A DNA stretch of 64,000 nucleotides from Macrostomum hystrix (lineage: Eukaryota > Animalia > Platyhelminthes). The notes under the pieces were generated by a model. It ran no database searches. It worked only from the letters and a program-made list of their open reading frames with translations, and was not told where the DNA came from. The translations under genes were made by a program, and so were the position numbers. Shown one piece after another: positions 41,201 to 47,200 of the stretch. Positions within the stretch are counted from its first letter, which is position 1; every line of letters begins with the position of its first letter. The stretch lies in NCBI GenBank assembly GCA_950097015.1, contig CATNEN010000024.1, positions 3,534,001-3,598,000 of the forward strand, written 5' to 3'.

Positions 41201-44200
41201 TGTCTCATCGCTCTCCCATGTCTCATCTCTGACGTGTCTCATCTCTGACGTGTCTCATCTCTGACGTGTCTCATCTCTGACGTGTCTCATCTCTGACGTG
41301 TCTCATCTCTGACGTGTCTTATCTCTGACTTGTCTCATCTCTCTCTCTCCCGTGTCTCATCGCTCTCCTATGTCTCATCTCTCTCTCCCGTGTCTCATCG
41401 CTCTCCCATGTCTCATCTCTCCCGTGTCTCATCTCTGACGTGTCTCATCTCTGACGTGTCTCATCTCTGACGTGTCTCATCTCTGACGTGTCTCATCTCT
41501 GACGTGTCTCATCTCTGACGTGTCTCATCTCTCCTATGTCTCATCTCTCTCTCCCGTGTCTCATCGCTCTCCCATGTCTCATCTCTGACGTGTCTCATCT
41601 CTGACGTGTCTCATCTCTGACGTGTCTCATCTCTGACGTGTCTCATCTCTGACGTGTCTCATCTCTGACGTGTCTCATCTCTGACGTGTCTCATCTCTGA
41701 CGTGTCTCATCTCTGACGTGTCTCATCTCTCCTATGTCTCATCTCTCTCGTGTCTCATCTCTCCCGTGTCTCATCTCTCCAGTGTCTCATCTCTCTCGTG
41801 TCTCATCTCTCCAGTGTCTCATCTCTCCCGTGTCTCATCTCTCCAGTGTCTCATCTCTCCCGTGTCTCATCTCTCCAGTGTCTCATCTCTCTCGTGTCTC
41901 ATCTCTCCAGTGTCTCATCTCTCCCGTGTCTCATCTCTCCAGTGTCTCATCTCTCCCGTGTCTCATCTCTCCAGTGTCTCATCTCTCTCGTGTCTCATCT
42001 CTCCAGTGTCTCATCTCTCCCGTGTCTAATCTCTTCAGTGTCTCATCTCTCCCGTGTCTCATCTCTTCTGTGTCTCATCTCTCACGTGTCTCATCTCTCC
42101 CGTGTCTAATCTCTTCAGTGTCTCATCTCTCCCGTGTCTCATCTCTCCCGTGTCTCATCTTTCCATAGGAGAGATCTCTAGTCTCTAATCTCTCTAATGT
42201 CTTTGGACTCCTAAAGTTAGTTTTAAATTCGTAAAGGTTGTTATAAATTCATGAAAATTAGTTTCCAATTATTTTTCGATCCGTAAAGCTAGTTTCGGAT
42301 CCTAAAACCTGTCAACTTATTAAACCAGCCTTTATAAAGAGGATGAAAAATGATAATTTGATTTGAATTCTCCCCACAGTTGAGACAGGAAATCGGGTGA
42401 AACGGACCATGGGAACAAGCACGTAAATTTCATCGATTTTAAAATTGCTTAACTAACAAAAGTCAATACTGAGTTCACAATTTAACGCTTTTTTGCTTCA
42501 CAGTCAAAATTACTGAACTCTCTACCTGGGAATGAAATGGCAATCGATGCACTCAACTTTAGAAATCTCTTTGCTTGATGCTTTTAAGACTAGTTTTCCA
42601 CCCCTTACAAGCAGAATGCATCGCTTGACCGAACTAAAGAGCATTCCAACTATTTAGTAATTTTCCTTTCAAATTCTTCGTTAGGAAAAAGCATTTACTA
42701 GCAATGGAGTGTATCGATTCTATCCACCATCAGTCTTTCTCTCTGTCTCATTCGAATCATTTAGAAGAAAATAAGAGCCGAGAATATATCTTCCCTACAA
42801 CAGACAGGTCCAAGTGGCATTGAGTCTACTCGAATCAGAAAAGAGAGAATAGTGGATGAAAGACTCCAAGTGTCAAGGATCTTAACAGCACTGAGTAGTG
42901 CTCAGGAATCTCTACCAGGCATTATTATTGTTACCTGACCAAGGCGCTGCTTGATGAGGCCAAATTCTTCGGCTCCCAAATCTAAGACGGAGGCCACAAC
43001 GGCAGCGGCTGACGCGGCCACGGTCGACTGCGGAGCCGCGGTTGCTGACTGAGTGTTCTGTCTCTGCTGCTGCTGCTTCTGCTGCTGCTGCTGCTGAAGT
43101 TGGTACTGCTGTGCTAGCGGACTAAGAGACGCAGAATGTGGATCGCAGTCGTCGTGTGTTGAACTCGAAGCCCCCGCCGCCGCCGCCGCCACAGCCGCCG
43201 AGTTGACGATGCCGTAGAGCAGCAGGGCGGTGTCCCTGGCGGACAGGTAGGCCCGCCTGGGGCTCTGGCAGGCGCTGCTGCTGCTGTTGCTGCAGCAGCT
43301 GGCTGCCCGACTGTCCGCATCGGCTGAGGCTGAGGCGGCTATAACGCAGACGTTGTCTGCAGCGTCGCTGGACACCTCGGCGCTGACTGAGACTGGCTGC
43401 GACTGCTGAGCCCGGCGCTGACCAGACGAAGCGGCCGTCAGGCTGGAGTGCCGGACGGGCGAGCCGTCGCCGCAGCCACCGCCGCTGGGATGGCGGCTGT
43501 CTGAGTAGCAGGTGGACAGCCGGTCCAGCGCAACTCGAGGCGCCCAACGATGAGCCGGTGTCGAGGCCGCCGTGCTGACCGCCGCCGATGTTGTTGCCGT
43601 CGTAGCGGAAGTCGCCGCTGTCGCTAGCGTCCTCAGGAACTCCTCGCGTATCGGCGCAGTTGGCATGGCTGTCGTCGTTGCACCCGAAATTGTCGCCGCT
43701 ATACGCGTTTTGTTGGGCAGTGAGGAGGACAGCATCAGCGGCGGCAGCGACTGAAACAGGGAGTCGTCGGCCGCGGCTTGATACGGCACGGAGGCGGCTG
43801 CGGTGGCGGCGGCGGCTGCGGCGGCCCCGAAAATGTTGGGCTGGCTCTGGTGGCAGGTGCACTGATGCAGCAGAGGCCGCAGCGTGGAGCACAGATTGTC
43901 CCAGGAGGCAGCCACGGCCAGAAGGCGTTCATCTGTTGACGCTGGTGGTGGTGCCGGAGGTGGCTGCGGCGGCTGCGTCGCTTGAATAGGCATAGCGCCG
44001 CAGGTGCAGGCCGCCAGGCTGTGGTGCGCCAAGTTCAGGTGCGGCGCCAGTGGCTGCTGATAGGCGGTGCCGGTGCTGCTGTGACAGGTGCAAGTGTGAC
44101 ACGTCGAAGAGCAGGCGCCATTCGAAGCGATGGAATGCAGCGAGTTGGCGAGAGCCACCGGCCAGTCAGTGGAAGCTGAGGATAGCTGTGAACACCCGGG

Positions 44201-47200
44201 GAGGTACGGCTGCTGATGCTGCTGATGCTGATGCTGCTGATGCTGATGCTGCTGATGTGGCTGTTGGTGGTCGGCAAACTGAATCGGCGGCGGAGGCTGC
44301 TGCAGAGGAGCCGGCAGATGCTGTGTGGAGGCGGCAGCAACAGACGGTGACGGCTGCTGGGATGCCGCTTTGACAGCGCCGCAGGCCTCCAAGGAGATGC
44401 AGAGGGCCTCGGCTAGGCGAACCCAGTCTAGCTGAGGCGGCGGCAGCGGCGCATGCGACGATGACTGCTGCTGTTGCTGTTGGTGCTGCTGCTGCTGGTG
44501 CTGCTGCTGCTGCTGCTGATGATGATATTGTTGATCGCTAGGAAGATCCATTTCTTAAAGAGCTCAATTTAAGACGGCTGTTATGACCGGACCATGGTGT
44601 CTGGAGTCCATTAATTGTTCGACCTTCGTTGATGGCGGAATTCAGCCGATTTTTTAGTTATTTTTATCAATCTCTGGTACACGCTCCCGCTAGCTCACAC
44701 TCACTCACAATAGACGTGGCGGAATGCTGCAGGCCGAGCAGCCAGTAAAGTAGCGAGTGGTGCGGAGGGGAAATTGAGGATCAGATCAGGGTTGGGAGTG
44801 GCCGGTTGGCGGGGGTGTGTGTTTTGTTAAATTTTTAAGTTGGGATGGAGGGTCTAATGAAGGATTAACAACGGACTTGAATTGTCCAGCAGCCTTTCTT
44901 TCTGTCTCGCTATGTGTGTGTGTGTGTGTGTGTGTGTGTGTGTGAGCTGAGGCCACTTGAGCACGGAATGCCGCTGAGTAGTTTCTAGTAGCCGTGTGTA
45001 TGCGAAGGCTGCAGGGGATTACCCGGGAGGGGATGAATTGAGGTTGACGGGAGCTGTGGAATTCCGACAAATGGAGTGAGGATTTTCAAGGCTTTAGACA
45101 CAGGTCGAATCCAACGCTGGTGAGAGGAGTGGTTGAGGCTTGGAGACTGGACTCACAACCTGGCTGGGGGTGAAACAAGTGACTGGATTCAAGGCCTAGA
45201 AAGAGAGTCACAAAGGAATAAGTAGAGCGGGAGAGGCTGTCGATAGAGAAGTCTAGTTACTAGCTGCTGCACTGGGGGTAGGTCGACCCGGCAAGTCTCC
45301 GAGCTTGCTATTTATATCGCCCCCAGATAGGTCCCTATCCCCTCCGCCGAGATCCCACTCTACGATTCTCCTAGAGGGGAAATGGGAAGAAGACTGGAAT
45401 TGCTGGCGCGCATTCACTCTGCGATACGGGCTTGACAACCAATAATCAAGCGAGAGAGCCAACCAAACTCGCACTATTGGATTGGAGAAGATAAGGAAAA
45501 CTGCTAAGGGAGGCTTGGAGAGAAGGAAGGAGAGAGAAAGAGAAGGAGATGGAGAGAAAAGGGAGAAAAAGAGAGAGGGAGAGAGGGGGAGAGAGAGGAG
45601 AGCACCTCCAATCCCAGGCACTGACGCGGTAAAGAGTTTAAGCTGACTTTAATTTTAATTTTGCCGATATTTCGAATTAAAAGTTCTTCGTCAGGGCAGA
45701 AAAGAGAGGGAGAGAGAGGAAGAGAGGGAGAGAGAAAGAGAGAGGGAGAGAGGGAGAGAGAGGGAGGGAGAGAGGGAGAGAGAAAGAGAGGGAGGGAGAG
45801 AGGGAGAGAGGGAGAGAGATAGAGAGAGAAAGAGAGAGGGAGAGAAGGAGAGAGAGGAAGAGAGGGAGAGAGGGAGAGAGAAAGAGAGAGGGAGAGAGGG
45901 AGAGAGAGGGAGGGAGAGAGGGAGAGAGAAAGAGAGGGAGGGAGAGAGGGAGAGAGGGAGAGAGAGAGGGAGAGAAGGAGAGAGAGGGAGAGAGAAAGAG
46001 AGAGGGAGAGAAGGAGAGAGAGGGAGAGAGATAGAGAGAGATAGAGAGAGAAAGAGAGAGGGAGAGAGGGAGAGAGAGGGAGAGAGGGAGAGAGAGAGGG
46101 AGAGAAGGAGAGAGAGGGAGAGAGAAAGAGAGAGGGAGAGAAGGAGAGAGAGGGAGAGAGATAGAGAGAGATAGAGAGAGAAAGAGAGAGGGAGAGAGGG
46201 AGAGAGAGGGAGAGAGAAAGAGAGAGGGAGAGAGCGAGAGAGAGGGAGAGAGGGAGAGAGGGAGAGAGAGGGAGAGAGCGAGAGAGGGAGAGAGGGAGAG
46301 AGAGGGAGAGAGCGAGAGAGGGAGAGAGAGGGAGAGAGAGGGAGAGAGAAAGAGAGAGGGAGAGAGGGAGAGAGGGAGAGAGGGAGAGAGGGAGAGAGAT
46401 AGAGAGAGAAAGAGAGAGGGAGAGAGGGAGAGAGAGGGAGAGGGAGAGAGAGGGAGAGAGGGAGAGAGGGAGAGAGGGAGAGAGGGAGAGAGGGAGGGAG
46501 AGAGGGAGAGAGAGGGAGTGCTCACGCAAACGACTTAATTATTATTTCGTAATATTTTAGTTGTTTTCTTCGCCAGGGCAGAAGAGAGAAGAAGAAAAGG
46601 GAGAAAGAGAAGAAGATAGATGCAGACGGCAACAGGGAGGGAGAGATGTGGTGAGCACCTGACACAGAATTCACAATAATTCACAAGGTCAGGAAGGGCT
46701 GCAGCGGAGGTTTTTCACTAGGCCGTGACTGCTTCCGCACTTCTTATTTCATCTTTTTTCCTCTATTTTTAGATTGATAAAAGTAACAAAGGTTCGCTTT
46801 ACTTTTGTCTTTCTCTCGCTTCTAGGAGAGAGAAAATTTTCTAAAGACAGTGAAGCTGATGTATGTCATTTTCATATTTTATCATAGTGAATAGTGATAA
46901 CTAATTATTTCATCACAGTTACCTAGCGTCTATTTTTAGATTCAAAGTTCTACCGTTAAGTTTGATTCTTGCATCAAATCGATAAAATAATTTGATTTTA
47001 GTCTAGAAATTTGTCTCTTTTTCGATTTTTTCGACAAATGCCTGCTGCAAAAGAATTAATATTAATGTTGTCAATCAAACAGAACCACTCGATCTGTCAG
47101 GACTGCAGATATATGTAGAGAATGAGTCTAAGATTGAGTAGGATTAGAAAATCATTAAACGCAACATGACCCAAACGACAATCTAGGAAATAAATCAATG

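Follow-up and report, generated by a model that had tools for sequence, protein, structure and literature searches.

The stretch of DNA analysed here (the window) comprises 64,000 nucleotides (nt) of the flatworm Macrostomum hystrix, positions 3,534,001 to 3,598,000 of the forward strand of contig CATNEN010000024.1 (GenBank assembly GCA_950097015.1). Its minus strand carries a gene for CASK, recognised exon by exon from Pfam matches which follow one another in genomic order as Pkinase (60.5, 58.4 and 57.5 kb), L27 (54.2 kb), a second L27 (26.8 kb), PDZ (25.8 and 25.6 kb), SH3 (23.9 kb) and guanylate kinase (GUK, 21.5 kb). CASK is a conserved scaffold protein, the kinase/L27-1 end of which determines the partner complexes that it joins. 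Between the exons that share L27-1 lies a 20.5-kb intron containing a long open reading frame (ORF), and we consider it probable (roughly 0.68) that this ORF provides the first exon of a CASK isoform without the kinase.

The host gene has an N-terminal CaMK-like kinase domain, as indicated by the Pkinase matches on three exons, and the kinase C-terminal exon found its best PDB matches in the CaMK domains of CASK (E ~1e-26, compared with ~1e-19 for CaMKII). Two tandem L27 domains follow and then PDZ, SH3 and GUK, the canonical CASK order, based on Pfam and, for exon F, on PDB. Since exon boundaries divide the PDZ domain, both of its halves score under the Pfam gathering threshold. Exon E, which carries the start of L27-1, ends in CTG GAG followed by GTAGGA at 54108. 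The next coding exon, exon F, is preceded by ctgcag, starts at 33569 (CTC TAT GAC) and ends in ATG followed by GTGAGA at 33396; it encodes the end of helix 3 of L27-1 plus the first two helices of L27-2. The intron between them (33570-54107) splits L27-1.

The intronic ORF begins in the context TAA GAA ATG GAT CTT, with an in-frame TAA two codons before the ATG, and its coding part ends in CTT GGT CAG followed by GTAACA (42935/42934), a GT donor in phase 0. With the read-through tail beyond the donor it occupies 42902-44551 (549 aa); the stop-to-stop frame is 42905-44554. The initial annotation had placed the ORF at 42935-44551 inside this intron, with the upstream TAA and a phase-0 donor compatible with exon F; all of this was borne out when read from the sequence, and the peptide islands that it quoted are all present in the translation. 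The GC content at third codon positions is 0.71, compared with 0.59-0.73 for the CASK exons. In the whole genome (220,453,370 bases in 42 contigs) the ORF is single-copy and is therefore no transposon. Mini- and microsatellite arrays flank the ORF at 41001-42164, 45703-46518 and 49429-49994, one with a 16-nt unit repeated 70 times, one of AGAGAGGG repeated 100 times, plus a third; these arrays are a source of spurious repetitive ORFs in several frames.

Amongst 1.84 billion representative proteins searched with phmmer, the sole relative of the ORF was PAA74977.1 (P0001), the 'hypothetical protein BOX15_Mlig023611g1' of Macrostomum lignano (E=2e-60). The GenBank annotation of M. lignano was made exclusively from RNA-seq transcripts and TransDecoder ORFs (PMC5730564), and the orthologous region is therefore transcribed in that species. 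The ORF was found to match no Pfam family, it gave a chance match only (E=0.13) against PDB sequences, and a literature search on the M. lignano gene identifier returned no match.

The window was compared with the 21 kb around the PAA74977.1 gene on contig NIVC01000910.1 (locus L002). By blastn, L002:10028-11430 aligns to 44503-42929 of the window. Unique alignment within the 21 kb is confined to the ORF, about 1 kb upstream of it and two small non-coding blocks, all other matches being to short interspersed nuclear element (SINE) or satellite sequence. Residues 1-321 of the ORF correspond to one M. lignano frame and the remaining 218 residues to a second; neither half contains stops, and the two half-frames were compared separately throughout. 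Amino-acid identity is about 70% (69% and 72% for the two halves). The Nei-Gojobori method gave 1.04 synonymous (dS) and 0.23 nonsynonymous (dN) substitutions per site, with a dN/dS of 0.22 (bootstrap 0.16-0.28), and the C-terminal half alone, past the M. lignano frameshift, gave 0.26. Readings of the same alignment in shifted frames gave 1.7 and 2.0, and third codon positions hold 220 of the 399 nucleotide differences. Insertions and deletions are in frame within each half and are located in Q/H/A/P low-complexity linkers; an H/Q tract at residues 95-113, for example, is missing from M. lignano. These comparisons indicate purifying selection specific to the frame of the ORF, between species so diverged that neutral intron DNA has ceased to align. 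The initial annotation had named a lack of conservation as a ground for abandoning its proposal; conservation was found. It is very probable indeed that this is a real, conserved exon under selection, and one which is transcribed in M. lignano.

Conservation starts at the ATG, with ATGGA(T/C)CTTC in both species, and ends six bases past the shared CAG/GTAACA; the aligned coding part ends in VASVMDLGAEEVGLISQRLCQ, followed by GTAACA. The read-through tails past the donor are unrelated (10 codons in one species against 42 in the other) and contain no conserved stop. Homology that ends at a shared donor with unrelated tails behind it is the signature of a 5' splice site and not of a stop-terminated single-exon gene. 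Upstream, a TATA element sits about 760 nt before the ATG within a 17-mer, GGGGCGATATAAATAGC, that has no second occurrence in the 220-Mb genome when one mismatch is allowed. This 17-mer may be a core promoter, which would imply a leader of about 0.7 kb. The features of the locus are collected in Table 1.

Table 1 Features of the CASK gene and of its intronic ORF, with positions counted in the window
Feature	Position	Strand	Basis
Putative alternative first exon, coding part; 539 codons, ATG to CAG (1617 nt)	42935..44551	minus	ORF, shuffles, M. lignano homology
5' splice site GTAACA after CAG, phase 0	42929..42934	minus	CAG/GTAACA identical in M. lignano; similarity ceases right after
Candidate core promoter GGGGCGATATAAATAGC, TATAAAT box 45310-45316	45307..45323	minus	17/17 nt identical in M. 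lignano L002
Putative 5' leader, ~0.7 kb, with conserved 14-26-nt blocks	44552..45290	minus	M. lignano alignment, blastn blocks; transcription start site (TSS) inferred from TATA box
Conserved 26-nt leader block CGAAYAATTAATGGACYCCRGACAC with upstream ATG	44596-44621	minus	M. lignano alignment
Upstream ORF (uORF) in putative leader, 15 codons	44564-44611	minus	M. lignano uORF 16 codons; peptide not conserved
CaMK-domain exons, within open frames 60336-60584, 58262-58525 and 57272-57673	57272..60584 (span)	minus	Pfam Pkinase, PDB CASK CaMK
CASK exon E: L27-1 helices 1-2 and start of helix 3	54108..54226	minus	Pfam L27 E=1.3e-5, profile positions 1-38/53
CASK exon F (58 codons, both boundaries in phase 0); candidate splice target	33396..33569	minus	Residues 20-58 align to CASK L27C chain 1ZL8_B
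Shared downstream CASK exons	21325..26927	minus	Pfam per exon
Rest of L27-2	within 26670-26927	minus	Pfam
PDZ	within 25684-25875 and 25285-25671	minus	Pfam
SH3	within 23706-24041	minus	Pfam
GUK	within 21325-21744	minus	Pfam

On the reading that we favour, the ORF would be the coding part of an alternative first exon of flatworm CASK, about 2.3 kb in length, its transcription driven by a TATA-box promoter of its own within the 20.5-kb intron, as the conserved TATA element suggests. Translation starts at the ATG at 44551, where the conservation with M. lignano begins, and the exon terminates at the conserved phase-0 donor, which would most likely be joined to the acceptor of exon F at 33569. Exon F is the next coding exon on the minus strand after the donor, and its acceptor is also in phase 0, allowing the two to join in frame. 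The short isoform would bypass exon E and the CaMK-domain exons, and its product would be without the CaMK domain and helices 1-2 of L27-1 while keeping L27-2, PDZ, SH3 and GUK, an architecture of the LIN-2B type known from Caenorhabditis elegans. An isoform of this composition had been put forward in the initial annotation; the CASK host, the domains downstream (Pfam, PDB) and the reality of the exon have been upheld, and the junction from 42935 to 33569 we infer from splice-site phase and gene order. In other animals, the CaMK domain and helices 1-2 of L27-1 bind Mint/LIN-10, liprin-alpha, Caskin and Dlg/SAP97, and L27-2 binds Veli/LIN-7. By analogy, the short form should keep Veli/LIN-7 and PDZ-ligand binding and lose the contacts with Mint, liprin-alpha, Caskin and Dlg.

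Several observations weigh against a CASK isoform. GenBank lists the M. lignano model as a separate gene. No protein joining the exon to CASK exons was found in the protein databases searched, where the only match was the 323-aa M. lignano model. Word-indexed searches with the C-terminal half of the ORF and with the unique part of P0001 added nothing new among the 8000 candidates listed, a weak negative since they were probably swamped by low-complexity sequence. Frame compatibility alone would arise by luck one time in three. None of ten CASK exons taken from the window was found by tblastn against L002, that is, within 10 kb on either side of the M. lignano ORF. When the positions of the collinear blocks are extrapolated, exon F of M. 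lignano is expected just past the end of L002. Finally, the M. lignano assembly contains one frameshift near a C5 run at about L002:10825 (L002:10790-10830; NIVC01000910.1 ~300,783-300,823), by which the GenBank model is shortened to 323 aa with its last ~45 residues out of frame. This shift is likely to be an assembly error or a defect of one homeologous copy.

The most serious alternative, which we regard as unlikely although by no means negligible, is an independent nested gene with its own promoter. It would encode an orphan protein of about 540 aa that stands by itself, and its transcript would end in the intron or be spliced to a small terminal exon with little conservation, without ever joining CASK. 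The M. lignano annotation, a separate gene with a single-exon coding sequence and no other gene called within 21 kb, agrees with this, as does the lack of a joined protein in the databases searched. Conservation, however, halts right at a perfect 5' splice site that both species share, with no conserved stop after it, and the last 27 residues are strongly conserved, which is unexpected ahead of an unconstrained tail; the phase of the donor, moreover, agrees with exon F.

A terminal exon elsewhere in the intron was also considered. When the 9.4-9.5 kb that follow the donor in each species were compared by tblastx, no conserved coding block was found between the donor and exon F; the matches there were one SINE and two collinear non-coding blocks, equidistant from the donor in both species. 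In principle these blocks, 6.7-7.0 kb downstream, could be a 3' exon or untranslated region of a nested gene, but the 27-nt block within them looks regulatory rather than coding and is without a shared acceptor. As this block is 100% identical although dS in the ORF is about 1, a regulatory element fits better than coding sequence. The block is a poor candidate for an exon. A first exon of CASK remains the reading that we prefer to a nested gene.

Three single-copy conserved non-coding blocks were located on the minus strand at 36209-36235, ~36120-36133 and ~35910-35940 (within 36106-36235 and 35859-35941), with collinear M. lignano counterparts at L002 18115-18141, ~18230 and 18610-18640, 6.7-7.0 kb from the donor in both species. 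One is identical at 27 of 27 nt, and a TAATTA-type core is present in two. No hairpin and no Rfam match was seen in any of the three. We regard them as probable enhancer elements. As a micro-exon, the 27-nt identical block was rejected for want of a shared acceptor, and as a microRNA it was rejected on folding z-scores of ~0 (both strands, both species) and the absence of an Rfam match.

It is very improbable that the frame is open by chance, encodes no protein and lies in GC-rich DNA with CAG/GCN repeats, for instance an island of CpG-rich promoter or enhancer sequence. The ORF is 65% GC against about 42% in the surrounding intron and contains CAG repeats, so that long frames arise more easily here than in average DNA. 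The region indeed has CAG/CTG microsatellites, and ORFs of 100-256 codons occur in other frames too; the lack of any Pfam, PDB or wider homologue and the low AlphaFold confidence also point in this direction. Nevertheless, the longest frames in 500 dinucleotide-preserving shuffles of three nested regions were 484, 397 and 382 codons compared with the 539-550 observed, a length attained by none of the 500, and the remaining five frames of the ORF region contain 4-29 stops each. The low dN/dS of the true frame against the shifted ones, the excess of third-position differences, the in-frame indels confined to low-complexity linkers and the onset of conservation at the ATG would all be unexpected of non-coding DNA. 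Least probable of all is a decaying or recently pseudogenised exon, non-functional in at least one lineage, for which the M. lignano frameshift and its shortened product speak; all 539 codons are intact in the window, however, the half past the shift has kept its low dN/dS without stops, and since the shift falls on a homopolymer and the genome, a polyploid one, was assembled in the PacBio era, assembly error or a homeologue defect explains it more readily.

The product that would be added to CASK is rich in Q/H/A/S/P low-complexity sequence, in which nine islands are nearly invariant compared with M. lignano, for example residues 206-247, 410-462 and 511-537. The last 27 residues belong to the most strongly conserved parts, and C-x-C(-H) motifs are conserved at about 153-157, 182-184 and 231-234. 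Single-sequence AlphaFold modelling gave a mean predicted local distance difference test score (pLDDT) of 41.6, and 431 of the 539 residues scored under 50. Predicted helices at 43-64, 206-233, 431-460 and 511-538 coincide with conserved islands, the last of them extending to the splice site. The N-terminus is thus predicted to be mostly disordered and, judged by its single M. lignano homologue, is restricted to the genus Macrostomum, both of which the initial annotation had anticipated. The islands may serve in docking or membrane targeting and so re-address the MAGUK core, a function that is speculative. Condensate formation, palmitoylation and altered L27 pairing, as put forward in the initial annotation, are speculative too.

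The initial annotation had also read the terminal 13 residues as a weak echo of L27 helix 1. This was not supported. The C-terminal tail of the ORF had no Pfam L27 match at E<=1, BLASTP did not align it to exon E even at E<=100, and the proposed echo was rejected.

Kinase-less CASK forms from alternative promoters, to which the initial annotation had appealed, are documented in two other animals. The lin-2 gene of C. elegans has two promoters, with LIN-2B made without the CaMK domain and one L27 (PMC7260190), and CASK-alpha of Drosophila has an independent TSS within the CASK locus (PMC4075472). LIN-2B is the closer parallel in domain content: a second, internal promoter removes the CaMK domain and one L27 and leaves L27, PDZ, SH3 and GUK, the same cut as is predicted here. 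In contrast to LIN-2B, the Macrostomum form would carry 539 unique, mostly low-complexity residues without a detectable relative outside Macrostomum, and its splice is deduced from sequence. CASK-alpha would share with it a TSS of its own inside CASK and a unique N-terminus ahead of the shared MAGUK domains (PMC4075472); it is MPP1/p55-like, however, lacking both L27 domains and having a short unique N-terminus before PDZ, whereas the Macrostomum form would keep L27-2 behind a very long one. With canonical CASK (CaMK-L27-L27-PDZ-SH3-GUK) the relation is that of a host gene, the window exons matching CASK best and lying in the canonical order. In the product the new exon would stand in place of the CaMK domain and most of L27-1; it resembles no part of CASK. 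An internal-promoter kinase-less CASK being already known, what is new here is probably the Macrostomum-specific orphan N-terminus on a LIN-2B-like form.

A broader interpretation may be offered tentatively, although taken as a whole it is more doubtful than the isoform itself. The kinase and Mint/Dlg-binding module may have been swapped for a genus-specific disordered 'address label', the helical and Cys-x-Cys-His motifs of which re-target the synaptic/epithelial MAGUK core, itself deeply conserved, for instance through lipidation, metal binding or multivalent assembly. At the same time the internal promoter at the L27-1/L27-2 boundary, a position that it would share with C. elegans lin-2b, may be old in protostome CASK, with lineage-specific first exons grafted onto it.

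If the junction is true, a LIN-2B-type short form exists in flatworms, suggesting that an internal promoter at the L27 boundary is either old or recurrent. It would also provide a clean case of a large orphan exon, mostly disordered, that was born in an intron, came under purifying selection and was fused to an ancient domain core. The exon would then offer an isoform-specific handle in Macrostomum (a probe, an RNA interference target or a reporter promoter) by which kinase-dependent and kinase-independent functions of CASK could be separated. A gene-model problem would be flagged as well, the M. lignano orthologue being annotated as a truncated 'hypothetical protein'.

Elsewhere in the window, a SINE-like repeat of about 250 nt, read as tRNA-derived, has copies at 6020-6286, 10689-10847, 22518-22664, 34032-34223 and 53722-54031. 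It is also found in M. lignano at 75-85% identity, and its six-frame translation yields a recurrent 20-residue pseudo-peptide. A single-exon gene for a rhodopsin-type G-protein-coupled receptor occupies 8847-10025 on the minus strand, some 11 kb beyond the GUK exon (21.3-21.7 kb) in the downstream direction. Among named proteins its best matches are octopamine receptors of the alpha2-adrenergic-like kind, and its M. lignano homologues (P0002 and P0003, from UniRef) are 56-60% identical.

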